From NCBI GenBank assembly GCA_001643675.2, contig LSRY02000054.1:310001-374000 (forward strand): a stretch of DNA of 64,000 nt. Direction: 5' to 3'. The translations under genes and the position numbers were made by a program. This document shows positions 17,724 to 59,047 of the stretch, one piece after another (positions within the stretch are counted from its first letter, which is position 1; each line of letters starts with the position of its first letter). The notes below the pieces were generated by a model that ran no database searches, was not told where the DNA came from, and was given only the letters and a program-made list of their open reading frames with translations. Source of the DNA: Monocercomonoides exilis PA203 (Eukaryota; Protista; Preaxostyla).

Positions 17724-19714
17724 TAGGGTCATAATTTTAACTTGACCTTTTTTTATCAAGACCTTTTTTTTTAGTTAAATCAGTATCTTTTCCCACAATT
17801 TTATGTTTCAAAAGAATTTTTAGCACATATATGAATTCAAAAGATAAAAATAAATACATTTTGAAACAAACCCAATTTCGCATTTGGGGAGATGGTGGTT
17901 AAGCTCCTTCATTAAACTTCTGTATGGAATTGGAAGGAAACATGTGGCACAAAACCATCAGTTTGATAAATATGTTATTTTAAGAATTTTTTTTCATTTC
18001 ATTTCAATCGAAAAATTAAAAATTATTATGATCTTAAGAATATAATTAATAAAATGATAATTTTTGTGGAAATTTAATAAAAAGAAGGAAAGAAAAAACT
18101 GTAACGCGCAATGTCTTCGCGTAAGTTCAGGAAGTATCACAGTCGGCTGGAGCGAATAGCTCACATCGTTGTAGATGGAGTTGTTCGCATCACAAATGCT
18201 ATTAATTCCAAGGAATTTCGTCGCACAGGTTTCAAAAATGCAGTTTGAGCGCTGAGAAAATGAAGGCTGGTTGGAAAAGTTTGCAGACCTGCAACAGTAG
18301 TATGCAAAAAGGAACAGAGAGTTTCAGATATTATTCACATTGAAGCAAAGTCTGGAACATGATTAACTTTAAAAAAAAAGTAAATTGGTTTGTTTTATTT
18401 GCATTCCTTTGTTTTGTTCATTTGTTTTTCAGATTGAAAATGTTATAAACGACAACGATGACGAAGACGCTCCATTTACAGAAGTTTGAATGTCTGCAAC
18501 TTATGGCCTTGTCAAGCAACACACGGAGCTGAAGACTGGAACACCGAAAAATTTGGATATCAACCGACTGGATGTTTCGTGCAAAAGTGTGTTTTAAAAC
18601 CCTGGTGCGAAACATTCGACGAGCTGCACGAAAAATACCATTTCATCCCAGTTTTAATTTTAAACATCGATGAATCTTCAACGCAAGTACTTTCAGATTC
18701 AAAACAGCTTGTTGTCCAAACAGCAGATCCAAAAGCAGGTTATACGAAAGAACCACCAAGAAAGAATAATTCTTCATTCGTTGCAGCTGTTGTTACAGAT
18801 GGGAATACCTTTCCTTTTGTCATTTTGTGACCAAGCGTCAACCTGCCAGATGAGCTGAAATGCCTGTTATCTCCAACGCTTGAGATATGGGCAAATAGAA
18901 ATGGCTGAATGGACAACGAGTCCTTTAATATGAATGCTCTCACAGTTCTTCTTCCTTCTATCATCGAAAAAAGAAAGCGCATGTCACTTGAAAACGAACA
19001 CATTCTTCTCCTTCTTGATTCACATGCATCTCGCGCTGATCCATCGATCCTGCGAGAATTCCAAAAACAACAAGTCGAGATTTCAACCTTCGTGCCATAC
19101 ATCATTCACCTGTGTCAACCACTGGACAGAGGAGCGTTTGCTGTGTTCAAATCTGAACTGACAAACAGATTTGAGGCTCCATCTTCTTCTTCATCTTCCT
19201 CCAAACGAGCAGCAATTTCCGATTTTCTGCATCAAGCCATCCACACTGCATTATCTCCTTCTGTTATTCAGAAAGCTTTTGTCTGCAGTGGTGTTCTTCA
19301 CTATTCTTCTGGGCCAGTTCTTATGAAACTGCACGAATCTTCAATTTACCCTCTTCCATCTAGAAGAAATAGATTCAACTTTTTTGGAAAAGTGATAACT
19401 TACGAAAACCTATTTGAGAAATGGGAAAATCATTTAAAAATGAATATTGAATGGAAAAATGAAATGGATGAAAAGGAAAAAGATGAAATGAAGGCTGTTG
19501 TGGATAATAAAAAGTTAATATCAACTTGTTAAATACGATGATTCAGAAGATGAAAAGAAAGATTATGCATTAAATCGAGGTGAAGGAAAAAGGAAAGTTA
19601 TCAGAAGAATTAATTCTGATTTTGTTTTTTATTAATTTTGTTTTTTGAACTTTTCACACTTCATTTTTTTGGGTCAGAATAAGAAAAAGTTTCAAGATAA
19701 AATAATGACTCTTA
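17724..19714 (+). mobile_element. Degenerate pogo-type (DDE_1, DD35D) DNA transposon
   Basis: Transposase motifs NIDESS, NG(W>stop)M, LLLDSHASR and HLCQPLD with 35 aa between D2 and D3. Frameshift near 18593, in-frame TGA at 18828 and 18906. Left TIR taGGGTCATAATTTTAACTTGACC; degenerate right TIR ~19672-19714. Confidence 0.85.
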
Positions 19715-21711: not shown

Positions 21712-24700
21712 TTACTGATTTGGTGTTGAAACAGACGGAGAAGGAGCGGCAGAATCAGCCTTGCTCGAACGAGGTAGTGGAGGCAAAATGCTAAACGCAG
21801 GCAAATTGCATGGATTCGTATCAGATATTGGGCTGTTATCTGCAGGCAACTGGGCTCCTCCGCTTAACTGTTCACCAGTAAACGTTGACGTTCCGGGTGA
21901 ATGGACACCAAATGACGGTGAGCCAGAAGCATGGCCGATGATATTGCTGCTGCTAATTCCACAACTGTTAATGCCATTGCTATTGCTGCGGCTTGCCATT
22001 CGAGGTGGAGAAAACGCAGACACATTCCAACTGGATGATTGGGAATATGGAGAAGACAGCAAATAGTTCATCGAGCACGGCTGCAACAGACTCAGGGAAT
22101 TTGCATTAATTCCATCTGCAGCAAAAATATCTGTCTCTCCGAACGAGTCTGCACCGCTGACAGAGAAGCTGCTTCTTCCAACAGCATTTTCTTCAGTTGC
22201 AGACTCTTTTGAAGAAGAAGAATGAAAATCTGAAGAACAAAAGTCAATTGAGTCAGCTATGTGTTCTTCTCCTGCTTCGTCATCTGTACTTTCTTCGAAG
22301 CTGTCAAATCTTTCATCATGTTTAGGCTGCTTTTTGTCTTTTCCTGTTGCTCCTTCAGGATGTGCCTCCATTTCACCAAGTTTCACCACATGCGAAACGA
22401 GCTCTGTGTCACCAAACAGCTCCACAGGAGAGTGACGGTCGACAATCATAAACTCCTCGCTTTCATCATCACTGTTATTGCCTTCTTCGTCCTCTTCTTT
22501 AACTTCCTCTTCATCTTCCATGTCCACTTCATCATCCCCCTCTTCCACTTCTTCTGTTACATCTTCACCATCTGTATGTTCTCTTTCTTCCTCAAAAGTA
22601 GTTTTCTTGCTCGTTCTGTTACTTCCACCTCCATTCCTTTTGTGCTTTTCAGAACTCAAAGATTTCTTCGTTTTTCCGTCTGCTTCTTCTTTCTTGTCTT
22701 TCGATATTCCAATCAGAGATGCAATCGATGACCATCCAAATGATCCGCTGTGCCGTTTTAGTTCTGCTCCTTCTTTCTTCTTCTCTGTTGTTTGGCTTTG
22801 TTTGCTTTCTTCATTGTGTAAAGCAGGCAAATTGGACACAATTTGAGGGTTTTGCGCGTTTTGCATTGCTTGAACTCTTTGCTCATTCATTGGATGCTGA
22901 AATGTTGGTAGCTCAAAGTGTGTTTGTGAAGTACTCATGGAAGATGAAGGCAATGTTGAATCTGCTTCAACCCCTTCAGACAAATGTGTTGCTTCGGATT
23001 CATTTGTTTTTGAGTTGCGTTGCATAGATCGATTCACACTCACAATCAACACATCTGCCTCATCCAGAATGCTTATTTCACTGTTGTTGTTAGTGTTCAA
23101 TCCATCGTCTTTAATCCTTGTATCCGCATCAGTTCTTCTAGTGATATTTTTCTTGTGTTCTTCAATCTCCATTGAATCTGCTGCATTTGTTCCTCTTTCT
23201 GGAATTAAACTGCCATTTTGGTTTTGCCTCGTTTCATCTTCCACACCTCCTAATTGTCCAATCCATCTGTCTCTGCAATCTGCTCCATTTGAAGTGAATA
23301 TGTTTGAAGATGATGTTGCAGTTGCAACAGATGAAATGGAATTAATATTTGAATAAGAAAAAGAAGTGGTAGCAGAATATGTTGATGTTGATGCGGGAGA
23401 AGTTGAAATTGAAGGAGAAGAAGATTGCAATTGAATGCTGCTGGCAGCTGCATTCGAAGCTAAAATCGGTGAAACTGTTGGCTCAAGCGTGGAAAATAGT
23501 GTAAAATTCAACCCAATTTTGCTGTTCGTCGCAGCTAATCGAGCTTCCTGCTGAGCTTTTGAAGGTGCAGCCGCGTTGACATCGTCTGAATCAACAAGTC
23601 TGAACAGAATTTCTGTTTCTGATTCCAAATGAACTTCTGAAGTGTCTGACACAACTCCTTCAAAGGCATCTCCACTTTCGCTGTTAACTGCTAATGAAGA
23701 AGAAGATGATGACGATGATAAAGGTGACAAAGTTGAAGAGAGAGAAGAAGGATACCCGATTCGTTTTGATTCAGTTCCGTTCAAATTTGTATTTGCATTT
23801 GCATTCATATTTGAGTTCACACTTGAATAATTGTTTGTCTGGTTACTAAAAATAGGCGAAAATGCCTGAGCATGGGGCATATTGTGATCAAAATCATTGT
23901 AATTCAGAGAAAGCGCCTGAGAGAGTGCCTGGGAAAGTGTTTGAGGCGAGGCAGAAGAAAAAGAGGAGGAGGAAGAAGAATAGGAAGGAAAAGAAGGCAA
24001 ATGTGCGTCAGAAGAACTAGAAGCAGAAAATGGATCCGCATTTGATAGTTCATTTGCTCTTTCGCCTGCATTCTGATTGGGAATGTTGTTGATTGCATTT
24101 GGCCGTTGCAGAAGAGGCTTGAATCCAGGGAAGAATGAGGAAATCGAATTTGATGCAGAAACAGCAGCAGATGAAGGAGAGAGTGATGATGGAAGAGAAG
24201 AAGACATATTATCCTGAGAAGTTTGCTTTGATTGAGAAGAAGATGCAGTTGTTGAATCTGCTGCCGAAGATGCATTGTTAGCTTCATTCAATGAACCATT
24301 CGCATCGACTGTGGGAAGTGAATAAAATGGCTGCTTTGCGAAAGCTGTCTGTTGCAGTGTAGACAAAGGTGGGGTTGTGATGATGGTGAGTGGGTAAATG
24401 TTCCCTTCATCGTCCTTTAGCCCTTCTGCCAGTGATGATGGAGCATACAAATGGTTTGGGGCTGCTTTAGCTTTTGTGTTGGGATTTGAGTCAGAATTTG
24501 CATTGGATGCTGAATTGACAACTTGGAAGTCGAAAATTGACTTTTTGTATTCCAAAAGTGGTGGTTGGATGGTTGCTGGTGTTGAACCAAGAGAAGATGT
24601 GGAGGCTGCAACAGAGTTAGAGGAAACAAATGAAGAAACTGGAGAAGAGGAAGAAGAAGAAGGCATTGTCATTCCAGTAGATGCTGAAGCAGAAGCAGAA

Positions 24701-27232
24701 GTAGAAGCAGAAGCTGATTTGTTTACAGCTGAAATTTTGCTTCCCAACTGTTGATTAATCTCTTTCATCTTCAGCTGATGCAGTTCTGCATCTTCATATA
24801 TCACTTGTGGCATGAGAACAACTCCACCTTCACATTCACTGCCTCTTCCTCTGCCTCTGCCTCTGACTATCTCCTCCCTAATTCCTCCTCCAATTATTGA
24901 AGGTGAATGAACTGATGCAATCCTCAAAGACCCTTCACCAGATGTTGGACTTAAACTTGACCTTGAATTTGAGCCAATCCCAAAACTTAAACCAGAACTG
25001 GAATTCAGAATGTCATCTGACTCTGAGTCGATGCTGGTGAAGCCCATAAGATCAATGTTCCTCTCAAAAAGATCTCTTTCTATTCCACTTCCTCTTTCTA
25101 TTCCTCCTCCTCTCCCATTTTCGATTCTATTGGATATTCCCCTTTCTGTTGAATATATTTTATTGTTACCACTATTTGTGTTCATGTTGCTGTTAAGATT
25201 GTTAATATCTATGAGATTGCGCAAATGTGATGGAGATGATCCCAACTGACTTGCAAATTGGTCAAATATCGAGTTTCTAGACACTGACGGAGAAGAAGGG
25301 GAGAAGATTCCATCACCCAACAGCTGCAGAGGAGACGAAATCTGTTTATGAGAAGGAGAAGATGGAGATGTCAAAGAGAAAGAAAGGTTTGAAAGAGGAG
25401 CAGATGTGAAAGGAGGAGAAAAAGAAGATGAAAGGGAAAGGGGAGGAGATTCAGCGGAGGGGGCAGGGAATTTAGGTACAGCACCATGTGGAAGTGACTG
25501 AGTTGTAGCGGAAGGGGAAGAAAGAGAAGAGAAAATAAAAGAAGAAGAAGGGAGGGAAGAAGAATTGATTTTGTCAGCTGCTTGTTCTTTGGATCTACCA
25601 ACCGTACTATTATCAACAGAATTCAAATCCATTATCATTTTTTCATTAACACTTGAATTTTTATTTAAACCATTCATATTGTTTCGAATGATATTGTCTT
25701 CTTTTCCACCATTTGCGCGTAATCCACCAAAATTCCCCATCACATTATTCTCATCTGTTAGTTTCCCATCTTCTCCTCTACCACCTCCGTTTCCTTTCCC
25801 CTTTCCAACATCATTTGCTGCAGCCATATTTTTCATTGCCAAGTATGAAACACCAGAAAACCCTTGTTGATTCACAGGAATCACAACTGCACCAGTCGCT
25901 GGTTGTGCCTGCAAATACTGATGAGAGAAATTCTGTGTAAATTGATTCGTTCCATTTGACTCAAAGGAGCTGCTTCCCATTGGAGTGCTTGAAGCTCCGC
26001 TGTAGAATCCAGTAGTTGGATACACTGAGCTGCTTATTGCAGGTGATGGAGGAGAAAATGTGCTGAAGCACTGCAGAAGAGGAGGAGAGTTAACAAACAC
26101 TGAGGGGATAGGGATGTTTGTGCTGTTTGACAAGTTTGGAATGTTTTGAATAGCTTGTGTGTTTTGTAAGTTTTGTAAAGGCGAACTATTTTGCTTTTGT
26201 TGTTGAACTTGCTGAACTTGCTGAACTGGCTGAACTTGTTGAATTTGTTGTTGCTGTTGTTGTTGCTGCTGCTGCAATTGCATTTGAGGCATCATCATGA
26301 ACAACATCTGTTGTTGATATTGAGACTGAAACTGCTGCATTTGTTGCTGTTGTTGAATTTGCTGCTGAATTTGTTGAGAGGCAACTCCATCAATCACTGC
26401 TGTTTGTGTGGCTGGTACAAACATCGGCTGGAACGGAGTCTGCATTGCAGCGTAAGGGTATGGCTGCATTGCATTCCATCCTGCTGGGAGTGTTTGACTG
26501 GCTAGTTGTGATTGAGGAATCTTCAGAAAAGTTAATGTCTGCTGCTGCATTGGAGGCTGGGACTGTAGCATTGGCTGTTCTAACTGTGTTAGCTGTGGCA
26601 ACTGTGAAACCTGTGTTTGTGTTTGTGTTTGTGTCATGGATGACATTACTTTGCCTTCTCCTTCTTTCTTTTCCTGTTGATTTGTTCTTTGAATTTGCTG
26701 TTGTTGATAAATTTGGTTGGATGATTGCGATTCCATCACCATGGGAGAAATTGGCATGATCTGCATTGCTGTATTTTGTTGTTTAGCTCCATCAGAATAA
26801 ATCTGTTGTGAAGTTTGTGTTGAAATTTGGGTTTGTTCGGTCGCTTGCTTTGTTTGTACAGACATTTGCTGTTTTGTTTGCAAAGAAAGTGAATTTTGAG
26901 TGAGAAATTCGTTTGTTTCGTGCTCAGCAAATTCGTTTGTGTGAAAAGATTCATCTTGATGCAATTGTTTCAAGTTATCTTTTGAAATATCTGATTCTAA
27001 TTGATTTTTTGACAATGTTTTGTTTTTTTCTGTTGAAATTGAAGATAATTCACTTTGAATGTTGCTATCGTTTATTGCTTCTTTTTGATTCGCATTTGAC
27101 GCAATGCTGTTAATTCTGTCTTTTTCAATCAAAACATCCTTTTGTGTGTTCTCTGTCCGATGCATTTGTTCTCCTTTTTCCGTGTTGACTGTATCAATCA
27201 CGCCTTCATTTGAAGCAATGGAAGAAGAGGAA

Positions 27233-27270
<38 letters not shown>

Positions 27271-30200
27271 AGAGGAAGAAGAGGAAGAAGAGGAAGAAGA
27301 AGAGGAGGATGATACTGAAGTTGTTTGCTCTCCAGTTCTCTTTCCTTCCTGTTTTTTCTCTTCTTTCTGTGCTTCTTTTATGGAATCTTTAATGTTTTCT
27401 TTTTTATCCTCTTTTTTCGCATTTCCTTTTGTTTTTGTCTTTTTTGTGTTTTGTTTGTGTGTTCCAGTTGGAAGAGCAGGAAAAGCATCAATTGAAAGGT
27501 TTGACGGAGGAAGTGAGGAGTTAAACGATTGAAAAGATGAAGATGATGATAAAGTTGTTGTTGATGATGATGGTGAAAGAGAAGAAGAAGAAGAAGAAGA
27601 AGGTAATATCACTGAAGATGCTCCAATTGTACTTCCATCTTCTTCTTCTTCTTCTTCGTGTTCATTTGATTCCAACAACTTTTTCACCAGTTTTGGGTCA
27701 TTTTTCATCATTTTTTCAAACAATTGCAATTTCTGTTCAGTTGTCAGTGAAATCCCAGAATCAGCAGAAGGCTTATCATTTGACATCGAAGAGGAAGAGG
27801 AAGAAGAAAAAGAAGAAGAAGAAGAAGGAAGAGAAGAGGATAGTGAAGACACATTGTGTGCCATTGGAAGATTATTCATTGCAACGACAGAATTATCAGC
27901 ATTTGACGATGTTGAAGAAGAAGAAGAAGAAGAAGAAGAAGATATCAATGAATTTTCTTCCTTCTGAATTTGTGAATTATTCTCAGCTGGAATCTCTTGT
28001 TGACTCACATTCTGTTGAATTTGCTTTGTTTGTTGTTGCGAAGCTTCGATATTCTGAAGATATTCCATAGAAATTGGTTGTGAAGAAGAAGAAGAAGAAG
28101 AAGAAAATGATGATGATGATGATGAAGGTTGTTGAATTTGTTGATTTTGCTGAATTTGTTGAATTTGTTGTTGCATCACCCCAAACTGATTGAAAGGAGC
28201 CATCATTCCACCTCTGCCTTGTTGAAATGGAGCAGAAATTGAGTTATTGAAAGGAGGTGTTGTTGATGAAGAAGAAAGAGAAGAGGAGGAGGAAGAGGAG
28301 GAAGAGGAGGAAGAGGAGGAAGAGGAGGAAGAGGAGGAAGAGGAGGAAGAGGAGGAAGAGGAGGAAGAGGAGGAAGAGGAGGAAGAGGAGGAAGAGGAGG
28401 AAGAGGAGGAAGAGGAGGAAGAGGATGAAGAATTAGAAGGAGAAGAAGAAGAAAGATGAAGAGAAGAAGGAGGAGGAGAGACAGAAGAAGGAGAATTCGA
28501 GTGGAAATGAGGCTGAAAGGGGAAAGGCATTGTTTGGAAGGGAGGGATCATTTGAGGCTGGAAGGAAAAGGAGTTGATGGGATAAGCCTGAAATTGAGGA
28601 AGAGAAGAGGAAGAGGAAGAAGGAGAAAGAGAAGAAGAAAGAGAAGAAGAAGAAGAAGAAGAGGGAGAAGGCAGAGGAAATCCATTGAAATTGCCAGGAA
28701 ACTGATAATTGTAAGGAAACTGTGGGAAAAAAGAAGCAGAAGGAGGAGGAAAGGGAAAAGATTGAGGTTGAAGCTGAGGTTGCTGAATTATTTGCTGCAT
28801 TGTTTGTTGTTGGAATTGAGCTTCGTGCGGAAGGATGATGGGGAAGGAGGACGAAGGCATTGGAGGAAAAGAAGAAGAAGAAGAAGAAGAAGAAGAATTT
28901 GTTGATGAAGCAATAGTAGAAGCGCTAAGCGAAGAAAGAGCAGGAGGAGAAAGAGAAGAGGCAGGAGATGTTGTACCAGCAGCAGCTGTTGATGAAGCAG
29001 AAGTAGCAGTAGTAGAAGAAGAAGGAAGATGAGCAATGGAGTTATTATTGGAAGTTGTGGTTGCTGTATTTGAGAGAGTGGGGTTTATTGGAGATGAGGA
29101 AGAAGATGAGGAAGATGAGGAAATAGAAGTTTGAAGGGGAATGAAAGAAGAACGAGGAATTGATGAAGCAGAAGCAGAAGCAGCAGCAGAGGAAGAAGAC
29201 GACGAAATCTGGTTCGAATTTACAGAAGAACCTGAATAATAAGTAGCTGAATTAATTTGTTGTTGTTGTTGTTGTTGTTGGGATTGAGATTGTGATTGTG
29301 GTTGTGGCTGTATTTTGCCGGCAGAATGAGGCGGAAGCGTTGCCGGCAAAATAATGTCACTTATGGTTTTCTGCTTCTTCTTCATTGAGGTGCGGACAAG
29401 CACGCCTTCTATGATGATCCCTCCGCGTGTTTGCTCAAGGGCTTTTTGGGCATTCTGTGTGAAGGGAGATAAAGAGAAAGCAAGTTAAAAATTTGAGTGG
29501 AAATTTATTTTTTATATGTAAAATGGAAATATAATAACATAAAATCATATAAAAAAGTGCAAAAAAGTGCAAAAAAATAGCAAAAAAAAAAAGAAAAAAG
29601 AAAAAAGAAAAAGAAAAAGAAAAAAAGAAAAAAAGTAAAAAGTAAAAAAAAGAAAAAGAAAAAAAAAACATAACAGATAAATAAATTCACAATATATTCT
29701 AAAAAATATATTATTAATAAAAATAAAAATGAAAACTCCTCTTCCAATCACATACCTTCTGCCCTGTATCATTCTTCTGATAGTACACATCTCCAAATCC
29801 TCTGTACCCTCCCTTCTCTCTCAGCGGCAGCACCACTCTTTCACAGACCCCAAACGCGCTGAAGACTTGTCTGACCCTTTCCTCGCTGAATCGCTCCATC
29901 GCCCCCGTCGCTGCCTCTCCCTCAAACATAATATGGACACAGTTGCTTAGAGAAGACGAATCACTCCACCCAATCTGCAGCTGCACCCCTTTGAATAGCC
30001 GCGTCCCTGCTGTCGCCTTCGCCACTTCGGCTTGTGACCGCCGCGCGAACTGGATGTAGGCGGCTCCGGAGTCCTGGGTATACTCGATTTTCTCGACTGA
30101 ACCGAATTTGCTATTGTTTATAACAGAATTTGTTTTGATAAATCATAATTTTTTGTATATATGTTAAATATTATTTACGCACAATTATTGCTTTCATACC

Positions 30201-30793
30201 TAAAAAAATCGTGAAGTTCCTCTTCTGTCGTGTCAAAGGGAATATTCTTTACAGATATATTCGAATTTCTTGTAGCTGGGCGGATCCGAATCGGCTTTGA
30301 TTTAATTGCCTTTAATTTATAGTTTTTTTTTTTCAAATTTTTTAATTTTTTGATAAAATTTATATGTTTGCATACTACAACGTTGCGTTCTTCGAGAATT
30401 GATGTAACTGGTACTGAAGACGTAAAATAAATAAAACCATATCCCAATCTGACTTGAGTTCTTTTGTCAATTTTGATGTCCACCTTTGCAACTTTTCCAT
30501 ATTTCTCAAAATAATTTATGATATCCTGCTCTGAAACATCGCTTGGAATATCACCAAGGAAAAGTCCCCCTAAAAAAATAAATGTATTTATATGATTAAC
30601 GATGAAATTAAATGGAAAGAGAGATATTGTAACGGTAAAAAAAGCATTTAATTGTTTTTTGTTGTGAAATCAATTAAATTCAAACGTTCTTCATCATCGG
30701 GAGTTGCTATTGCAAAAAGTTAAAATATCGTGATTTTGAAAGCATAAAAAACAATTGCACACGTTGTGGAAAAGATCCAACGGAATGAATCAT
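21712..30793 (-). CDS. RNA-binding protein with three N-terminal RRMs and a ~2,550-aa Ser/Gln-rich disordered tail
   Basis: RNP2/RNP1 motifs LFLGDI...LGYGFIYF; ISVKNI...AAYIQF; VHIMF...RGFGDVYY on small exons 29.7-30.8 kb. These splice into one giant terminal exon (~29454-21712). Confidence 0.85.
28283..28424. repeat. (GAAGAGGAG)n 9-bp coding repeat, poly-Ser on the minus strand
   Basis: About 15 tandem units. A related (GAAGAAGAG)n tract lies at ~27220-27310. Confidence 0.9.
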
Positions 30794-34421: not shown

Positions 34422-37400
34422 ATGGAAGCAGTGAAAACTGTAGCCGCAAAATTATTGCAAAATTTAATTTCAATATTTAATGCAACTACAGCAATTGATT
34501 TTAAACTTGACGATGCGAACCTTGATAACAATGATATTGAAGCGCTGCTTACTGGTTTGAAATTTTGAATAATATTTTATGAATATAACTTTATTAATTT
34601 ATAGGTGATCGTTCAACAAAGTTACTCCTTGATTCTTACAGTCCTATGGATATTCAATCTCGTTTCGAAAAAGTTAATATTCCTCAGTCATTGGAGAAAC
34701 TTGGATTCACCCACCTTCGATATATTATTGACACTTCGGATTCATTTGTTCATAGGCTTGTTGTGACCGACGACCTTCTTCTAGAATTGTCTTTTGGCCC
34801 TCAAGAATCACTTATTGAACTTGCAGCATCTCTCTTTGGAAATGAACCCACGTTCTTATCGGAGCAAGAGCAAAAAGAAATCGATGCGATAAAATCAAAT
34901 GAGGAATTTCTGCGCGAAGCCGAGAAAGAGAAGCTCGAAGAGCAGAAGCGGCGCGCAGAGCGGGCAGCTCCAGAAATCCCCGACCTTCCTGTTCCGGAGC
35001 CAATTCCGGAGCCTTCTCCAACTCCGCCTTTCTCTGAAGTCGCTTCTCCTGCGCGTGCTGCGAGTGAGCGAGAAGAAGTGGCAACCCCCGGTGAATCGGG
35101 AAATTTCGTGGGGCTAGCTGATGGATCTTCAGTGAGTTCGCTAAATGCTATGGAGCATTCTGAAGTTAGTATAAAATCTCCTTCTTTCACCTTATCGCCT
35201 GTTGGACAGATGCTGAAGGCAAACAAAACCGGAGAAATTAAGAATAATTCTCCGAAAGCGAAGGTTGCTATGCAAGCTGCTGGGGTTCTTTCTCCGATAG
35301 CGTCTTCTCCTCTGATGAAAGAGAATTCTATAGAAATCAAAAATGTTGATGATAAAGAAGATGAAGCAAATAATAATAATAATAATAACGCAGAAAAAAA
35401 CAGAAATTTGAGTGAAAAGCAATTAAACAATGAGAAAGTGAATAACCAAGAAATTGTTTCAGTTATTTCGAATGAAAAATCAGAGGAACAAAACAAAAGA
35501 AGAGAATATGAAAAGAAAGAGGAAGAGAATGACGTGTTAGGATACGAAGCTTTGACACCTATTGTTATGATTCCAAAAGAAGTTTTGAATAAAGAGAGAA
35601 AAGAAGGGAAAATAACAAAAATTGAAAAAATTGAAAAAATGGAAAAATCGGAAAATTCGGAAAAATCGGAAAAAGCGGGAAAAGAAGAAAGAAATGAAAC
35701 TTTTCGGGAAAAAGATGAAAAAGAATTGGTGAATGAGGAAAATAAAGTGGAAAACAATGGAAATTTTATTGAAGAAGCAAAAACACAGAATGAAAACAAA
35801 GAAAATGATTTGAAAATGGAAGGGGGAAATAACATGAATGGAATTAATAACAATAATTATGAATCAAATTCTGCTTCTTCTGCTTCTTCTTCAAATTCTC
35901 CTTCTCCTTCTTCTTCTTCTTCTTCTTCTTCTTCTTCTTCTTCAAATTTATCAGCATCATCTTCTTCTTCTCTTTCTCCTTCTTCTCTTTCTTCTTCTTT
36001 TTCTTCTCAACCAAATGAAAAATCCAATCTTCAATCAACAATCGATAATTCTTCGAAACCTAACCAAAAAGAGGAGAAAGAAAATGAAAATGAAAAGGAA
36101 AAGGAAAAAGAGAAAGAGAAAGAGAAAAAAGAGAAAGAGAAAGAAAATGAAAATGAAAATGAAAAAGAAGAGAAAAAGAAAGAAGAAGAAGAAGAAGAAG
36201 AAATCGCAAAAAACGAGAAAAACATCCAAAATTCAACAGAAACACAAAAAAGAATAACAAAAAAGGAGATAGAAGGAAGAGAAGGAAGAGAAGGAAGAAG
36301 AAGAAAGATAAAGATCAGAAAGAACAAAGATACGTCTTCTTCTTCAATGATGAAGAAGAAGACAAAGACAAAGATGAAGATGAAGATGAAGAGAACAAGA
36401 ATTTTTCATTTCCCTCGCCCTCCAATCGGCAATCCACGTGTTCTTCACGACACACTGGTGCAACTGTGGGATGAAAGCATGATGCCTTTCTTCTTCTCTG
36501 GATCTTCTAATTCTTCTTCTTCTTCTAATACAAATAATTCTTCTTCTTCTTCTTCTTTTTATCTAAATTCTTCTTCTTCTTCCTCTTCCTCTTCTTCTTC
36601 TTCTTCTCTTTCTTCTTCTTCTTCTTCTTCCTCTTCCTCCTCTTCTGTCGTCGCAGAGCGCCATTCGTTCTTCCTCCAGCCGTCTCTCTGGATTTATCCT
36701 TCTTTTGACCAGGTTTTCCTTTCTTCTTCGCTCAAATTGACTGAAATTTCGCCTCAATTAAAGGAAATGCTGATGCATGGGGCATGGGGAAAGGAACTGA
36801 GGAGGGTGTGGAGGAAGGAGAAGGAGAAGGAGAAAGGAGAAAGAGAAAGAGAAAGAGAGAAAGAAATGGTGAAGGAGAAAGAAAGAGAAAGAGAAAGAGA
36901 AGAGGAGAAGGAGAGGGAGAGAAGAAGAGAAGAAGGAAAAGAAGAAGGAAAAGAAGGAGAAAGAAAAGAAGAAGGAAAAGAAGGAGAAAGAAAAGAAGAA
37001 AGAGAAAAAGAAAGAGAAAGAGAGAAAGAAAGCAATTTTAACCAAAGAAACCGATTTCCAACAGAAATTCAGGAATTGTTAGCTCCTTCGGGTGTGTGTC
37101 ATTTGTTTGAGGAGAAAGAAGAAGAAGAAGGAGAAGGAGAAGAAGAAAAAGAGAAGAAAAAGAAGGAAGAGAAGGAGAAAGAGAAGAAAGAAGAGGAGAA
37201 AACGGAAGAGGAAGAGGAGGAAGAAGGAGAAGGAGAAGGAGAAGGAAAGAGCAAAGTGAATGAATTAGATAATCTAAATAACATTACAAACAATAATAAC
37301 CAAAAAATGTCTTCTTCTTCTCTTTCTCCTTCTTTCCCTTCTTCTTTCCCTTCTTCTTCTTCTTCTTCTTCTTCTTCTTCTTCTTCTTCTTCTTCTTCTT

Positions 37401-38224
37401 CTTCTTCTTCTTCTTCTTCTTCTTCTTCTTCTTCCTCTTCTCCTCCTCATCCAAGGAGCATATTCCATGTGTTGAATGAAGACAGTCTGAGAGAAAATTC
37501 TGAGTGGAACATGAATGAAGCAAACATGATGATGATGAAAGATGATGAAGAAAGAGGAAAAGAAGAAGGAGAAGAAGAAGGAGGAGAAGAGAAAGAGAAA
37601 GATGAGAAGGAAAAGGAGAAGAAGGAGGGAAAGGAGGAAAAAGAAGAAGAAAAGAAAGAAAAAGATAAAAAAGAAGAAAAAGAAGAAAAAGAAGAAGAAG
37701 AAGAAGAGGTTAGCATTTTGTCGCATGCTGAACACACAACATCAAATCATGTTTCGTTTCCATTGACAACTGATTCATCTTCTTCTGAAGTTATGTTGGA
37801 TTCTTCCGTTTCTTCTTCTTCTTCATTTTATATTCCTTTTTCTTCTTTTCCTTCTCCTTCTTCTTCCTCTCCTTCTCCCTCTCCTTCTCCTTCTTCTTCC
37901 TCTCCTTCTCCCTCTCCTTCTTCTTCTCCTTCTTCTCCTTCTTCTTCTATTTCATCATCTTCTCCTTCTCTTTCTCTTCATCAGCCAACTCCTCAGCATC
38001 CTTCTTGTCATTCTCCTGCTATTTCTTCTTCTTCTCCTTCTCCTTCTTCCTCTTCTTCTTCTTCTTCTCTTTCTTCTCTTTCTATTTCTCCGGATTCTTC
38101 TTCTATTTCTCCGAAGGAAACAATTACGCAATTAAACAACAAAATAGATGCACAAATTGAACAACAACCAAATGTAAGTATTTCTTCTTCCTCTTCTCTT
38201 TCTCCTTCCTCTTCTTCCCTTTCT

Positions 38225-38257
<33 letters not shown>

Positions 38258-39856
38258 CCTTCTCCTTCTCCTTCTTCTCCTTCCTCCTTCCCTCTTCTTG
38301 GTTCCACCCCTTCTTTTTCTCCTTCTCCTTCGCCTTCTTCTTCCATCATGTCTGCCTTTACTGCTGATATTTCTCGTATTGCTGCTTCTTCTTCTTTTTC
38401 TTCTTCTTCTTCTTCTTTTAATTCTAATCCAAATTATCCATTTGTGCCTTCTTCATCCTCTTCCTCCTCTTCTTCTTCTTCTTCTTCCTCCTCATTTTAT
38501 TCTTCTACCTCTTCCTCTACCTCTTCTTCTTCTTCTTCTTCTTCTTCTTCTTTCTTCTCTTCTTCTTCCTCTTCCTCCTCTTCCAACCTCCAGCGTCTTT
38601 TTCCTCGTTCTTCTTGTCCGTCTCATCTTTCGTATCTGATTGATGCGCGAATAAGACGAAGCGAGCTGAAAGTAGAGCAGCTTCATTGTTTTATTAGAGA
38701 AGAAAGAGAAATGGTGGAGAGAGCAAGATTAAAGGCGATGGAGGAGAGGGAGAAGGAGAGAGAAAGAGAGAAGGAGAGGGAAAGGGAAAGAGAAAGAGAA
38801 AGAGAAAGAGAAGAAAAGAAAATGGAAGAAGAAAGAGAGAAGGAGAAGGAGAAGGAGAGAGAAAGAGAAAGAGAGAAGGAAGAAAGAGAAAGAGAAGAGA
38901 AGAAGAGGGAAGAAGAAGAAGAAAGAAGAAGAAGAGAAGAAGAAAGAGAAAGAAAAGAAGAAGATTTTAATGATTTCAATGAAAAATCGATGAATAAACA
39001 AGAAAACGAAGCAATTCGACCAATTTTTGTATCAAATTGTGGATGGGACGAGAAAGAAAGAGGAGAAAGAGAAGAAGAAGGAGAAGAAGAAAGAGAAGAA
39101 GAAGAAGAAGAAGAAGAAGGAAGAAGAGAAAGAAGAGAAGGAGAAAGAGAAGGAAGAGGAAGAGGAAGAGGAAGAGAATGTTATGAGTTTTATAATCCAC
39201 CTGAAAGGAAAGAAGAGAGAGAAAGAGAAGAAGGAGAAAGAGAAAGAGAAAGAGAAGAGAAAGAAGATGGCAATAATAACAATAAAAGTAAAGAGAAAGA
39301 GAAAGAAGAAAAGGAAAAAGATGAGAGAGAAAGAGAAGAAAGAGAGAAAAATGAAGAAGAAAACAAAGAAAACAAAGAAAACAAAGAAAATGACCCAAAA
39401 TATGCAGAAAACTCGATATTTCAACCAGAATTCGATGAAAATTCCATTTTTGAGAGCAGATTGGGAAGAAATAGCAAATTTCATCGTGTTTCTAAATCTC
39501 ATACACCTCCTGGTACCTCTTCTTCTTCTTCTCTTTCTTCTTCTATTTCTTCTTCTCTTTCTTCTTCCCCTTCTTTTAATACTTCTTTTAATTCTTCTTC
39601 TTCTTCTCATTCACTTTCTCCTTCTCCTTCTCCCTCTCTTTCTCTTTCGTCATCATCATCATCTTCTTCTTCTCTTTCTTCTTCTCTTTCTCCTCCTCCT
39701 CCTTCTTCTTCTTCTTCTTCTTCTTCTTCTTCTCATCTTCGTTCTCCTTCTCTCCATTCGTATTTCTCTCTTCGTTCTCATCCAAATTCTAATAATAATA
39801 ATATTAATATTAATAATAATCAAAATTCCCCTTCTTCTTCATTTTCCTCTTCTTCT

Positions 39857-39891
<35 letters not shown>

Positions 39892-40616
39892 CTCTTCCTC
39901 TTCCTCTTCCTCTTCTTCTTCCATTTCTTCTTCTTCCTCTTCCTCTTCTATCTCTTCTTCTTCCTTTTCTTCTTCCTCTTCTTCTTCCTCTTCTATTTCT
40001 TCTTCTTCTTTCTCTCCCTTTTCCAATTCATTTTCTTCCAATTCATTCACATCTTCATCATCAAATACACCTAATTCTTTTTCTTCTTCCATTTCTTCTT
40101 CTTCCTCCTCCTCTTCTTCTTCTCCTCCTTCTTCCCTTTCACCTTCCCCTTCCCCTTCTCCTTCTCCTTCTCCTTCCCCTTCTCCTTCTCCTTCTCCTTC
40201 CCCTTCTCTTTCTCTTTCTCCTTCTCTTTCCTCTTCTTCTTCTTCCTCTCCTTCTCCCTCTTCTTCTTCTTCCTCTCCTTCTTCTCTTTATACTCGTCTC
40301 TCCTTCTTCTTCAACTCATCCTTTCTCCACCAATTTCTCCGGCCGTTTCTCCGGCCGTTTCTCCGCTTCCTCTTCTCCTTCTACTCCTTCGCCTGTGGCT
40401 TGGCTTCGGCCTTATCTTTCCTTCTTCGAGCAATTTTCAGTTTTCTTTTTGCTTTTTCTCCTTCTCTTCCTCTTTGGCTCCTTTTTTACTTCATCTTCAG
40501 CGTTATCTTCGCATTTTCGCCTTTGTTTCCGGCCATGAGAAGGTTCGGAGAAATACACCGGAGAAATATCGGAGGAGGAGGGGGGGGAGGAATAGGAAGA
40601 GGAGGAATTAGAGGAG

Positions 40617-40648
<32 letters not shown>

Positions 40649-41014
40649 GGAGGAATGCTTGGGATATTGGTTTCAGTATTGAGTTGGGTGTTGGGGCCAT
40701 TGTGGATGGGATCTGTGGTTATGGTTATTGGGGGGTGGGGGTGGAGATGGGTGAGGGAGAAGAGGAAGGAGAGGAAGGAGAAAGAGAAAGAGAAGAAGAA
40801 GAAAGAAGGAGAAGAAGAAATGAAGAAGAAAGAAAAAGAAAAAGAGAAAGAGAAAGAAAATAAAATTTCTTCTTCTTCTTCTTCTTCTTCTTCTTCTTCA
40901 CAAATATCAAGCAAACAACCAAAAACACCCTCAAACACAGAAATTAATCAATCAGAAGACAAAACAAAGCAAACGCAAAATCAAAAGCAAAGTTCAACTT
41001 CAACCATTTCATTG

Positions 41015-41046
<32 letters not shown>

Positions 41047-41229
41047 TTCTTCTCTTCCTCCTTCTCCCCCCTTCCTTTCTCTCTGGCAATCCTTCCTTTC
41101 TTTCCTCCTTCGCTCCCACACCCCTCAGCCTCCTCCTCTTCCTCTCCTCTTTCCCCCGTTCACCACCCCCGAAGGCTTGTCTTCCTTAAAAAAGCTCTGC
41201 AATTCATTTTTCCCTTCTTCTTCTTCTCT

Positions 41230-41263
<34 letters not shown>

Positions 41264-42547
41264 TCCTCTTCTTCCTCCTCTGGCGGAATCCAAGCATTAA
41301 CCATCGAATGGCTGCATATGCAGCATCCGTCGAAAGATTTCAAGTTTTCACTGAAAAGTTCTCGTTTAGCAGGGCAGCTGTGTCCGGGATTGGGGATAGG
41401 GTATCAAGTGATGAAGTTTTGGATGGCGCTTGGAAGGGACATGAAGATGGACTGCATATTGAATATGCCGGAGGTTTGTTTGTGGGGTTGTGAGTGAGTG
41501 AGTGAGTGAGTGAGTGAGGTTGTGTGGGGTTGTGTGGGAGAGGAGAGAGAGAGAAAGAGAAAGAGAGAAAGAAAGAGAAAAAGAGAAAGAGAGAAAGAAA
41601 GAGAAAAAGAGAGAGAGAGAGAGAGAAAGAAAGAAAGAGAGAGAGAGAGAGAAATAATTTATTTATTTATTTTTTGTTTGATTTTAAATGATTTTATTTT
41701 CATTCATATTAATTCATTTGTTTTTCTCTATTCTCCTTCTCTCTCCTTCCTTCTCTCACTTTCTTTCTCTTTCTCTCCTTCTTCCCCTTTTCTCCTTCCC
41801 TTTCATTCTCTCTCCCTCTCTCTCTTTCTCCTTCTCTCACCTTCTCTCACCTTCTCTCACCTTCTCTCACCTTCTCTCTCTCCTTCCTTTTTTTCTCTCT
41901 CTCCCTCTCTCCAGCACTTCCACAACGCCTATCTCTATGCCAACTACTTCCGCTTCATCAATCCCATGTTCGAAGCCTTCTTTCAGACCCTCCGCTCAGA
42001 TTTAGAGGCAGACATCGGCAAATATGGCCTGGGGACTGTGGGGCTGTGTGTTTCAATGGGTTTTGTGGTGGATTCGTGTACGGGTGGAGGAGGAGGTGGT
42101 GGTGGAGGAGGAAGTTCTTCTTCTTCTTCTTCTTCTTCTTCTTCTTCTTCAAATTCTAATCATAATACGAACAATTCCGACAATTCAAACACTTCAGACA
42201 CTTCATCATCACATCACTCACACACCAACACTTCATCTTCTCTTTCTTCTTCCTCTTCTTCTTCCTCTTCCTCCTCTTCCTCCTCTTTTTCTCCTTCCTC
42301 CTCCTCTTCTTCTCTCCCTTCCTCTTCCTCTTCCTCTTCCTCCAACCCACTCTCCTCCTTCTTCCACCGCCCAGTCACGTGGCACCCAGAAGAAATGGCT
42401 CTCCCTCTTTCGCCTCGAATGTGCAGTTTCTTCCGCTCTCAGCAGTATCTTTCTATTTATCACACGCATCTGAAGAGATTGAGGCCGAACAATGGGACAG
42501 AGAAGAGGTTTTATATTGATTGGAACAGGGTGGCGTTTGGGGAGTGA
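34422..42547 (+). CDS. ~2,544-aa protein: bacterial-type GNAT-like domain split by a huge low-complexity insertion
   Basis: Predicted exons 34422-34554, 34605-41473 and 41915-42547 with GT-AG junctions and frame preserved. Conserved-looking blocks occur mainly at the two ends. Confidence 0.8.
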
Positions 42548-54060: not shown

Positions 54061-57000
54061 GGCATAGGTGTAACTGTCTACCTTTTGTAATTCTGGATTT
54101 TAACAATTAATTTTGTGATGTTTCAAAAGCAAAAATTATTTAAAAACTTTTGTATGGACCGATTTTTCGCAAAAATTTTTGTTTCTCGTGAAAAAACAGT
54201 TTTTAAAAATGACCCATAAATATGAGTATTTTTTAAAAAAATAAATAAAATAAGATAATTATGAAATAAAAAGTGGATAAAAGGTCATTAATTATTACAT
54301 TGTCCTATTTCAATAATAATAATTTGAGAAATAAAACATAAAAAAAAAATAATAAATAAATTAAATTATTTTGATCAATCACATAATAAATTTTCATGTT
54401 TGAAAGGAATCTGTTTTTGCTTTTTTGCATGATGGATTGTGCAAATTCTGGCCAATCTTCCTTTTACTTTATGTTAAATATATTTCACATAAATGGATGA
54501 TAATAAACATTTTAATTTGCTTTAACAGACTGCGCATTTTCATTTTGAATATCAAAGATCATTCTTGTTCATTTCAGAAATGATTCAGTTTTGAAAATTC
54601 TATATACTAATTCCTCTTTTTTGTTAGTATTGCATAATATTTCTATTTTCTCTAATATTCATTTTAATTATTCAAATTTTGTTTTTTTCTTTTAATTTTT
54701 TTTTAGCATACCGTTAATTGATATTCGATTCAATTTGATATTATCAATAATTTTTTGTGTTCATATTGTGATTTCTTTTTTAAAAAACGAATGAATCTTA
54801 ATGGTTTCTCCTTTCAAAAGAACAACATAGACAAAAAAATACCGTCATTTCATATTCATTTTTCCTTATCATTTTTCATATTTTCTATCAGTTCATTGAA
54901 AAAAAGCGTGTTTTTTTAATTCACAAGCCTTTCCATTACATGCTAAACTTATTTGAGAGATCAAAAAACTACGAAAAAATTGTTTGATTAAATAATGACA
55001 AATAAATAACAGAATGAACAAAATTTCCATTACAAGAAGTTTCAAATTCTATCTCTATCTCTATCTCAATCTTTATCTCTTTCCCTATCTTTCACTTTAT
55101 CTCTTCCTCGTATTTGTGGATAGTCCAAGTCACTTCTCCTTTTTTCTCTCCCTGAATGCAAATTGCGTTCTTTCACATCAAAATCTCCATATTCACTCTG
55201 TTCTTGTCTATCGCTCTAATCTTTCGCTCCTCTCCCTTTCTTCCCTCTCTTTCATTCATCTTCATTGCTTCTTCTTCTTCTTCTTCTTCTTCTTCTTCTT
55301 CTTCTTCTTCTCTTCTTCTTCTTCTTCTTCTCAGCTCTCCTTCTCGATTCTGCCTGATGTTGAAATTAACAGAAGCTAGTGGCAAAAAATGATGGAACGG
55401 TGAAAACGAAATGGCAACTGGCTTTTCGGCTGCTCTTTCTCTTTCTCTCTCTTTCTCCCACTTCGTTCTGTTCTGATCTCTATCTCTATCTCTATCTCTA
55501 TCCCTTTCTCTTTGCTTGTCTCTTTCTCTCTTCATATTCTCAATCCTCTTCTTCTTTTCTCAAAATCTTTGTCTTCTTCTCATAATTGCCTTCCCTTTCC
55601 CTTTTCCTCCCTCCTTCCATCTCTCTCCCTCTCTCTCTCTCTCTGCTCTCCTCAGCAGCTCCTCTGGTAACATTTCCATCATCACTATCTCAATCAATTT
55701 CCGATCCTTCTTCACTGTGTCATTCACAATCTCCTCCAATTCTTCTGTTCTTCTCTTTTGCTTTCTCCATCGAATTGATACAACAACAAATCCTATCAGA
55801 ATAATAAAAAGAACAATTGCCATGGCAATCACAGCCCACAATAAACTTGTCAGGTTGCCTCCTTTCACAACATTGTCATCTCCACTTGTTTTGGATTCAC
55901 TCCTGTTCTTTAGGACAAATGGATCAGTTGAGGAAGGAGGTTCTGCATTCCCAAATAAAATGTGCACACTCACTTCTATTTCTTCTCCACAACTGCTTAT
56001 GAGATCTTTCTCCACACTTCTTTCAACTTGTGTTTCTGACAAGAATCCACTTAATTCAAAATCATAATGTTCAATCTCTTTCTCTTCTCCTTTCCTCTTC
56101 ACAACAGAGAATGACAGATTGCATGGAACAGGAAGCATTCCTTTGAATATCAGCTTCATTCTATCTGTTGATTCTTTTGCTTCCACACTCTCTAGAACAG
56201 GAATGAAAAACGATGAATCCCTTTCGGAAGCAATTCCTTCAAAACTGCATCCATTATTTAACATCCAAAGTAATGTGTTTCTCTCCAATCCATCTCCCCC
56301 TTTCAAACCCATCACATTCAATATTCCAGAATCTGAACAGATGATATTTCTTCTCAATGACGGATATCCTTCAATGAATGGATTGTTGTTCTCAAATCTT
56401 CCATCATTAACAGTCATTTCCCCTCCACTCATTGTTATTCCACCATCTGGCGAATTCCAGATTGTCGCATCCTTCATCATAACAGAACTCTTCACAACTT
56501 CAACAAGAGATCCGTCCCATTTGCAAATATCTTTTTCCTCATTCAAATATTGTTCATTTCTTTCCTTTGCGCTCCCATTAAAAATGCAACTGTCCATTTT
56601 CATATCCAAACAATCCTCCTCTTTCATCAATTTCCCTTTTGCTTTGTTTGAACGGATTCCACCCATTGTGCAATTTGTCACTTGCATTGTCTTTTTCATT
56701 GACAAGCAAGATATCAATGATTCTTCATTTCCTTCAACTGAAATGTTTTCTGCGTTGAAATCCTTGGTTGTTAATTGTCCACATTCATTAATATCTATCA
56801 GAGATGGTTTAATTGTTGAATTGCTAATCTCTAATGAATCTATCACTGATGGAAGAGAAGATGATAGATATATTGAAGATTTTTGAAGAATGAGATTTGA
56901 TATTGTGCATCCGTCAAGTTGTAACTCTCCTTTTGCCATGTTTATAATGTGAAATGGAATGTTTGTAAAACCTGCATTTCCATCTTCATCAGATTGTTTT

Positions 57001-59047
57001 GTAGTGAATGAGCAATTCATTATCTCAAGAATCCCTCCCTCTGGTGATATCAATGATTCGTGTGAAGAGATGAAATTTGAATCAAACACAAAATTTACTT
57101 TCACCAACGAGACTGTTCCGGTTGTTGTCACCAATGCCCCTCTTGTTCTTTCAATCTCTGATTTCACTTCAACTTCACACATTTCTCTGCTCTTCGAACT
57201 CAAACTCATCTCCTCCAGATTAATTTCTCTTCCAATTACACTCTCAGCGTCAACATACAATAGACTCACATATTCAGATGTCAAATGCACCATCCCATGC
57301 TCAATTGAATCACATGGAAGAGCGTTTGTTCCACATTGCCAGTCATTCGATCCATTCACGCTGCAAACAATAATTGTGTCACTCTGATGGATCGTCACAA
57401 ATCTAATCAGATCTGTGTCACCTGGATAATCGCAACTATCAATTCCATAAATTGCATTGTAACGCGTATAATGACCTTCTCGAAGATCAAACTGAAATTG
57501 TGTTTCATTGATTTGAGATGTGATGTCATAACATTCAATGAAAATATCTTTTCCAACACTTGCACCGTTGTCACTGAATTTCATTCCCACAAATGAAAAA
57601 TTCAATTCTCCTCTTTCCTTTGTTGCCAAATACACTCCTCCTCCTTTTCCTGAACTAAGGCTGCAACTGCAATGACTGATTTCCGATTCAATCATCTTTA
57701 TTGATCCAGACTTTCCAAATGCGAAGAATATCGCCCCTCCTTTTTCACTATCTTCTGCTTTGTCTTCTGTGATGTTGCTCTCATTTACAGCCAAACAAAT
57801 CTTTTTCTCACTTGCAGACTCCAAAATGCTCGCTCCATTTCCACTTCTCTTCACTCCTGAAAATGATGAATTGTCAATATTGAGACTCATTTCCTCACCC
57901 ACTTTATTTATCTTTGTTGTTGATTCAGTTCCTTTGATCAGAAGAAGACATCCTCCACTTTCATTCAACGATTCTCCTCGAACATTCACCAAATGACAAG
58001 AAACTCCAGAATCGTGAATAACAAAAATGTTGTTTCCAATATAGCACGAATCCATTGAAAAACTGTTCACTTTCACATTTCCTGATGAAAGTGAAAACAG
58101 TGTAACTGATGATTTCACATCTGAAAGCGTGACGGAGTCTAATTCAACCATCTTCCAGTTGATTTGATCAAGGAGAATCCAACCGTATTTTGCTTCCCTC
58201 CAATCACGCTCATCTCGCAGTTCTTCATATGCAATTCGCCATTTTGAGTGTTTGATTCGATCATTGATGTGATTGTTCTGCTAAAACTTGGTGGAATAAT
58301 ATTCCCAACGAACTTCATTTCTTTTTAACCTTGTGCTATTTTTTGTACAATTTTCACTCAAATCGGATATTTAATTTAACATCTATTTAATTTCATAAGA
58401 AAATAAATGATATTTTATGTGTTTTGGAAAAAATTTTAATATAACAATGTTAATAATTAAAAAGAATGTTTCACACGATTTGTTTGTTCTTCTTTATTCA
58501 TTGTCACCATAGCTTAATAATAATATCCTTGTACTGCATGCAAATATTCATCTTAAAAATCATAAACAAAATTCATAAAAACTTGAACGATATATAGATA
58601 ACAATTCATCGCACACTTTTAAACTACATTTATATATATGATTTGTTACATGATCTCAAACGAGGGTTCAATTCTTGGCGAAAGAAAGCAAATTCTAAAT
58701 TTTTGGATATTCAAAATATAATTGTGGGATTGATCAAAATAATTTAATTTATTTATTAATTTTTTTTTATGTTTTATTTCTCAAATTATTATTATTGAAA
58801 TAGGACAATGTAATAATTAATGACCTTTTATCCACTTTTTATTTCATAATTATCTTATTTTATTTATTTTTTTAAAAAATACTCATATTTATGGGTCATT
58901 TTTAAAAACTGTTTTTTCACGAGAAACAAAAATTTTTGCGAAAAATCGGTCCATACAAAAGTTTTTAAATAATTTTTGCTTTTGAAACATCACAAAATTA
59001 ATTGTTAAAATCCAGAATTACAAAAGGTAGACAGTTACACCTATGCC
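54061..59047. mobile_element. Nested 4,987-bp non-autonomous element with 320-bp TIRs (Mutator/Pack-MULE-like architecture)
   Basis: 54061-54380 is the reverse complement of 58728-59047 (one mismatch seen). Ends GGCATAGGTGTAAC. No transposase inside and no clear TSD. Confidence 0.85.
55560..58318 (-). pseudogene. 5'-truncated fragment of a large beta-helix-like surface receptor gene (863-aa ORF with TM helix)
   Basis: GGAIF/GGGVY, FSDNGA, CG..ALPCDSI and TM LLWAVIAMAIVLFIILIGFVVVSI. No signal peptide; upstream homologous frame is frameshifted near 58152; 3' end runs into GA-rich sequence. Confidence 0.75.

Follow-up and report, generated by a model that had tools for sequence, protein, structure and literature searches.

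A putative GNAT-fold acyltransferase with giant low-complexity loops in Monocercomonoides exilis, and the unnamed family to which it belongs

We analysed a gene in a 64,000-nucleotide (nt) stretch of contig LSRY02000054.1 (positions 310,001 to 374,000, forward strand; hereafter the window) of Monocercomonoides exilis, a protist that lacks a mitochondrion. Its coding sequence is divided into three exons (34422-34554, 34605-41473 and 41915-42547, + strand), with a predicted product of about 2,544 amino acids (aa), 88% of which is insert. A first-pass annotation made from the letters alone had proposed that the two compact ends are halves of one bacterial-type, GNAT-like domain, and that the low-complexity sequence between them is either a giant loop or is removed by splicing. 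All of the motifs that it quoted lie where it had placed them.

Results

Gene structure and coding character of the insert

The gene model is listed below. Identities are to the Blattamonas orthologue P0041 unless another is named, iE is the independent E-value of a profile match, and the RNA word share is the share of sampled sequence words of 34422-35400 that are present in four RNA runs from one study.

34422-34554 (+): exon 1, ATG at 34422; N-terminal segment, 45% identity over 29 aa, E 5e-6
34555-34604 (+): intron 1, 50 nt, GT..AG, phase 1; position shared with the Blattamonas orthologue; RNA word share 0.90
34605-41473 (+): exon 2, 6,869 nt, single open frame
34607-34810 (+): core piece 1, N-terminal helices and first two strands; profile 39-107, iE 1.6e-11; 48% identity
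41285-41473 (+): core piece with the central strand (IEWL), Gly-rich GQxxPGLGxG loop, helix and strand ending in PE; profile 121-186, iE 2.6e-17
41474-41914 (+): intron 2, 441 nt, GT..AG, phase 0, microsatellite-rich; called from sequence; position shared with the Blattamonas orthologue
41915-42079 (+): exon 3 core piece, HFHNAxLY helix and next helices; profile 186-237, iE 2.5e-13; 67-78% identity to oxymonad orthologues
42365-42547 (+): last core piece and stop codon, WxxEE motif and C-terminal helices; profile 239-278, iE 7.7e-6; 45% identity

The intron that the first-pass annotation had placed within the C-terminal half is retained as intron 2, and its gene architecture is refined by the extra 50-nt intron and by a Gly/Ser insert in exon 3.

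The insert is coding sequence, in frame as the annotation had stated. The frame at 34598-41497 has no stop across 2,299 codons. Within the insert (34802-41290, 2,163 codons) the coding frame has no stops and the other five frames have 36-112, whereas in 1,000 local 60-nt shuffles of the insert the stops averaged 78.5 and never numbered fewer than 56. Ser makes up 27% of the insert, Glu 15% and Lys 8%; about 72% of it is low-complexity, and the gene region holds no N bases. A control sample of 200 kb of the M. exilis genome contained 15 frames of 800 or more codons, none with a low-complexity fraction of 0.4 or above. Thus, long low-complexity frames are uncommon, not the norm, even in this genome.

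The RNA word share was 0.90. Splicing of intron 1 alone would give an expected 0.92, and removal of the insert from about 34790 onwards would give 0.27. Therefore, the transcript extends at least 600 nt into the insert. We consider it very likely that the whole insert is present in the mature mRNA.

An unnamed protein family

A two-row profile was built from single exons of the window gene and a paralogue. At E 0.001 or better it matched at least 543 representatives (50% identity level), most of which are 270-340 aa long. When the window gene was searched exon by exon with a second profile, made from 84 compact members of about 300 aa, it was matched colinearly in four pieces, each with iE 1e-5 or better (profile 39-107 at 34607-34828, 121-186 at 41270-41473, 186-237 at 41912-42079 and 239-278 at 42365-42484). 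By these profile matches the window gene is a member of an unnamed family of about 300 aa, and both halves belong to one uncharacterised family, as the annotation had proposed. The halves had also been said to match contiguous parts of the compact homologues. Their order is indeed the same, but profile positions of about 100-120 are missing from between them and have their best match in the middle of the insert.

The family's Atlas clusters have 66, 414, 133 and 110 members, and it was detected solely by full profile search. Word-index protein searches with either paralogue's piece, a first GTDB scan, plasmids and two Atlas feature searches were blank, and sequence searches of the gene pieces in Pfam, NCBIfam and PDB gave no match. 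No GNAT model of Pfam or NCBIfam (Acetyltransf_* included) matched any of 91 family members at E 0.1, and a literature search found no description of the family. Leptospira, which the annotation had named as a host of stand-alone copies, is absent among the named family matches, no search having been aimed at Leptospira copies.

The near-invariant residues of the family are G, W, Q, F, L, PGQ, PG, P, HNA, Y, P and W. The window protein retains every one of them except the Pro of LPGQ.

Predicted fold and GNAT motifs

Fold evidence comes from two predicted models, one for a compact bacterial member and the other for the Blattamonas orthologue. For the compact member, AlphaFold gave a predicted local distance difference test (pLDDT) score of 92.5 and a predicted template modelling score of 0.89. 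In VIA-align, NatD was on top with Z 8.6-8.8 (root-mean-square deviation 3.4-4.8, 139-155 residues aligned), AtaT reached Z 8.2, and acetyltransferase folds filled almost the whole of the top 50; Foldseek agrees. AtaT/KacT/TacT, TmcA and FeeM are among these structural neighbours. The model of the Blattamonas orthologue (942 aa) has a core with pLDDT above 90 around low-confidence loops and gives the same GNAT matches over residues 47-920 (Z 7.9). As the Z values are moderate, the weight rests on the consistency of the match list. These models support a GNAT alpha/beta topology for the family, and the GNAT-like fold of the first-pass annotation has held up on both of them.

The P-G-L-G-x-G loop (within GQxxPGLGxG) occupies the structural place of GNAT motif A, which it had been said to resemble; it does not fit the strict consensus of that motif. 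The window protein contains the HNAxxY motif, whose conservation is 92-98%; the register of this motif against canonical motif B was judged by eye only.

Anatomy of the insert

The inserted sequence is divided as follows.

34811-38587 (+): Loop A, about 1,260 aa; poly-Ser and Glu/Lys/Arg tracts
36647-36709 (+): weakly conserved island in Loop A; pairwise E 0.001 against P0041
38588-38728 (+): mid-insert island, YLIDxxxRR-like; 36% over 50 aa to P0041, E 1e-5
38729-41140 (+): Loop B, about 800 aa, low-complexity; holds the hydrophobic block
40367-40735 (+): two to three hydrophobic segments (stretches at about 40367-40535 and 40637-40735) that probably anchor the protein in a membrane; Kyte-Doolittle values of 19-mers reach 2.2
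41141-41215 (+): conserved helix ahead of the IEWL strand; E 4e-6 against P0041 (39% over 31 aa); modelled in the orthologue with pLDDT about 90
42080-42364 (+): Loop D, the Gly/Ser insert in exon 3, about 95 aa; also expanded in both paralogues

Profile positions of about 100-120, one strand of the compact fold, are unmatched at either end of the window protein. With two independent profiles built without Preaxostyla sequences, the island at 38588-38728 tops the insert at these positions. The equivalent stretch also ranks first in two Blattamonas genes and in Paratrimastix, where it scores 13.9 bits and lies near strand 2. It seems quite likely from these alignments that the island is the core strand missing from both ends. 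With this strand apparently in its middle, the inserted sequence probably forms two loops. The annotation had the domain folding around one giant loop; the core of the orthologue model does close around large loops, which in the window protein are probably two, split by the core strand.

The possible membrane anchoring suggested in the annotation is borne out to the extent that the hydrophobic block is conserved in oxymonad orthologues. Its segments have counterparts upstream of the IEWL strand in the oxymonad-type orthologues P0041, P0012 and P0084, and none were found in the paralogues or compact members tested. From this conservation we regard it as fairly likely that the block anchors the enzyme to a membrane. 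For the core to close on one side of a membrane, the segments would have to make a hairpin or cross it an even number of times.

Compact members have about 63-95 aa between strand 2 and the central strand, against 303-605 in the other Preaxostyla proteins and 2,191 in the window protein. The loop sequence is barely conserved, and for this reason we read the loops as probably tolerated rather than functional in oxymonads.

Bacterial fusions and gene neighbourhoods

All 48 long bacterial homologues are fusions with the family domain at the C-terminus. The partner is a histone-deacetylase (HDAC/AcuC-like) domain in 28 and Usp domains in 20, and the DxDxH zinc motif is kept in 27 of the 28 fused HDAC domains. 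Additionally, 64% of the Atlas cluster of 110, which is mostly Myxococcota, is HDAC-fused. The HDAC fusions that the annotation had named for myxobacteria and acidobacteria are confirmed, in myxobacteria and an acidobacterium, and extend to a gemmatimonad. The Usp domains stand N-terminal to the family domain in deltaproteobacteria-like bacteria (L076:2924-4834 and P0162-P0181, 20 clusters). In a single case, P0098, the family domain is N-terminal to an AMP-binding, acyl-CoA ligase-like enzyme.

Neighbourhoods were counted over 80 GTDB loci, and these counts mirror few lineages. In 23 of them, mostly Calditrichota, the gene immediately upstream encodes an HDAC, and efp then follows in 16. In about 30 deltaproteobacterial loci the family gene lies between ComF-like and DUF2520 genes. 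A radical SAM gene was a neighbour in one case, without recurrence.

A tight order of HDAC-family deacetylase, family gene and elongation factor P (EF-P; Lys in PGKG), often with overlapping stop and start codons, was seen at L027, L046, L059, L069, L077, L081, L085, L087-L089, L093-L095 and L097 (mostly Calditrichota). EF-P is a candidate substrate, or the order may be mere lineage synteny.

Eukaryotic members

The family occurs in chytrid and glomeromycete fungi, amoebozoans, Chromera, Anaeramoeba and every Preaxostyla tested. Named eukaryotic members are from Rhizoclosmatium, Acaulospora, Balamuthia, Phalansterium, Cochliopodium, Chromera, Cantina, Pigoraptor, Anaeramoeba, Streblomastix, Blattamonas and Paratrimastix. 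The label 'bacterial-type' is therefore too narrow. The Blattamonas orthologue BLNAU_2820 has the same two intron positions, the islands and the hydrophobic block, with a shorter insert. A second Blattamonas gene (BLNAU_2724) and a Paratrimastix member (PAPYR_4938) were also found, and M. exilis has two more paralogues, expanded at the same loops as the window gene.

G000:C58:1755560-1758580: paralogue MONOS_4260 (L004), split by low-complexity inserts of 300-500 aa
G000:C50, about 78200-83250 (-): paralogue (L014), split by low-complexity inserts of 300-500 aa

In paralogues and orthologues the inserts are annotated as translated at the same loops. By this comparison, loop expansion at these positions runs through Preaxostyla.

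In a quick, unrooted tree, in which the window gene was represented by exon 2 alone and many rows were unnamed, a single group of 49 rows takes in the named eukaryotic ones (Shimodaira-Hasegawa-like approximate likelihood ratio test 92, not starred). The window gene groups with BLNAU_2820, Streblomastix and Paratrimastix (93), and the C50 and C58 paralogues stand apart (99). Such a tree shows no direction of transfer. A recent lateral transfer into M. exilis was rejected because the Blattamonas orthologues share the introns and relatives occur in Streblomastix and Paratrimastix.

Discussion

A model of the window protein

On balance, we favour the view that the locus is one gene encoding one protein, with a GNAT-fold N-acyltransferase core and giant disordered loops, and probably tethered to a membrane. 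We propose that about 300 residues, spread over five or more separate pieces, would assemble as a GNAT-fold domain. The remaining sequence would be extruded as disordered loops, one of which would carry the hydrophobic anchor that tethers the enzyme to the membrane. The Gly-rich loop would bind acyl-CoA and an amine would be acylated, most plausibly of protein lysines. In bacteria, the family domain may be the 'writer' counterpart of the AcuC/HDAC-like deacetylases that are fused or adjacent to it.

These steps differ in strength. That the family has acyltransferase activity is likely. Protein lysine is a plausible substrate by analogy, one that we hold rather loosely. Among bacterial lysine GNATs, deacetylases, Usp proteins and acyl-CoA ligases are familiar as partners or substrates, as in AcuA/AcuC/AcsA and in mycobacterial Pat with Usp (PMC8556138). 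The deacetylase, Usp and acyl-CoA ligase links of the family are thus the usual company of such enzymes, and therefore favour protein lysine over small amines. A broader proposal is tentative: these would be undescribed lysine acyltransferases, joined in many bacteria to an AcuC-like deacetylase so that writer and eraser share one polypeptide, and retained across diverse microbial eukaryotes. The oxymonad version would be tethered to a membrane and would still fold, despite a core strand isolated between disordered loops of about 1,260 and 800 residues.

Several results weigh against our model. A Z of 8-9 is just modestly above background for the structure library, and a common fold by itself shows no function. 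The strict motif A consensus, Q/R-x-x-G-x-G/A (PMC8556138), is not in the window protein and is missing from 66 of 86 members (present in 20). Where 91 of 91 compact members have the Pro of LPGQ, the window protein has Ala. The RNA evidence for the transcript ends at position 35400. The long-homologue fusion counts were drawn from one Usp-fused query and a few related lineages, so they are not independent events, and no HDAC link was seen among eukaryotic members. As for the island at 38588-38728, its score in the window alone is weak, being reached by 19 of 200 shuffles. Additionally, the AlphaFold model of the orthologue makes it a low-confidence helix outside the sheet and draws the third strand from residues 340-348; the island was left out because the model's alignment put those columns there.

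Alternative explanations

With the same fold and gene model, the substrate could instead be a small molecule (a polyamine, amino acid or lipid head group) or tRNA. We think this unlikely. Bacterial Zn-dependent deacetylases do act on acetyl-polyamines as well (PMC11532494; PMC8556138), the tRNA-acetylating AtaT/KacT/TacT, TmcA and FeeM are among the top structural neighbours, and a lipid substrate would suit a membrane anchor. However, the Usp and AMP-ligase fusions are better fitted by protein substrates, and no biosynthetic operon recurs among the 80 loci.

A second alternative is that the window protein is catalytically dead or a scaffold, its function lying in the disordered loops and not in the core. 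The Ala stands beside the CoA-binding loop, the insert dominates the protein, and the gene has the longest end branch among the oxymonad orthologues (0.65, over only 61 columns). Against this, all of the other near-invariant residues are retained, the exon 3 core is 67-78% identical to its orthologues, and it is the loops whose sequence is barely conserved. A dead enzyme is thus a distinctly poorer explanation.

Splicing of most of the insert, as a giant intron or as two introns flanking the island, would leave a near-compact protein. In-frame AG acceptors preceded by pyrimidine tracts do lie just before the island (38593) and before the pre-core helix (41128), but poly-Ser codons alone generate pyrimidine tracts. 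M. exilis introns have a mean length of 119 nt and 27.6% GC (PMC8767320), against 35-44% GC here. Together with the stop-free frame, the RNA word share and the translated inserts of orthologues and paralogues, this makes the splicing route that the annotation had left open very improbable.

Two separate genes or an assembly artefact, to which highly repetitive sequence prone to mis-assembly or mis-called repeat lengths might give rise, are largely refuted and can be set aside, since the frame is single and continuous without N bases and the orthologues, which share both introns, are colinear single genes.

Comparison with known systems

The nearest solved structures to the family model are of the GNAT superfamily: NatD/Naa40 (4u9w, 4ua3, 9syr), the AtaT/KacT/TacT toxins (6gtp, 5zgn) and NAT10/TmcA. 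The family shares with them a predicted mixed sheet, in which a Gly-rich loop precedes the central helix and the next strand is followed by an N-A-x-x-Y helix; the VIA Z scores are 8.2-8.8 over 134-155 residues. It differs in having 8-16% sequence identity to them, a length of about 300 aa against 150-200, a long conserved QNP..RPxLPGQ loop that precedes the Gly-rich loop, and Pro where motif A has Gln/Arg.

The family also resembles Bacillus AcuA/AcuC and mycobacterial Pat (PMC8556138) in that a GNAT-fold protein is tied to a Zn-dependent deacetylase, with Usp and acyl-CoA ligase associations. Unlike those systems, it often carries both putative activities on one polypeptide, has no detectable sequence relation to AcuA or Pat (no NCBIfam or Pfam match), and is without the deacetylase link in the eukaryotic members seen. 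By analogy the family may work like AcuA and Pat, yet it is not a member of either group.

Low-complexity insertions extruded from globular domains were described in Plasmodium (Pizzi and Frontali, 2001, as discussed in PMC2705789). So far as that discussion describes them, the likeness is in hydrophilic low-complexity tracts that leave surface loops while the core is conserved. Set against the same account, the window insert is rich in Ser/Glu/Lys rather than Asn, totals about 2,100 aa, holds a conserved hydrophobic anchor within a loop, and probably isolates a single core strand between two giant loops. Further close parallels are MONOS_4260, the C50 paralogue, BLNAU_2820, BLNAU_2724 and PAPYR_4938, which have the same domain expanded at the same loops, with the far shorter spacing given above for other Preaxostyla.

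Taken by itself, the giant insert surprises less, since protists are known to insert low-complexity sequence into loops; we see it as the extreme end of a known phenomenon, one that recurs in this lineage. Of the two results we value more highly the unnamed family and its fusions to deacetylases. This family has no Pfam, NCBIfam or PDB entry, yet it has a predicted GNAT fold and repeated fusions to deacetylases and Usp domains. For many uncharacterised bacterial deacetylases, it allows a direct test for a missing acetyltransferase partner, and it adds a candidate acylation enzyme for chytrids, amoebae and metamonads. The locus itself offers a natural series for loop tolerance, from about 63 aa in bacteria through 300-600 in other Preaxostyla to 2,191 here, with the core intact.

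Other features of the window

A second stop-free frame lies at 21712-29481 (-). It has 2,590 codons, is 49% low-complexity and Ser/Gln-rich, and shows no obvious globular island by eye; it is probably the last exon of a gene at about 29700-30700 that contains an RNA recognition motif. The gene at 2646-4151 (+) is one that we take to resemble the nucleosome assembly protein (NAP) family. Frames at 12769-15198 (+) and 55560-58151 (-) encode long single-pass membrane proteins with beta-rich extracellular parts and resemble a repetitive surface-protein family common in the C58 sample. Finally, the frames at 18909-19532 (+) and 60258-62396 (-) are transposase-like, DDE/pogo-like and hAT-like by eye.

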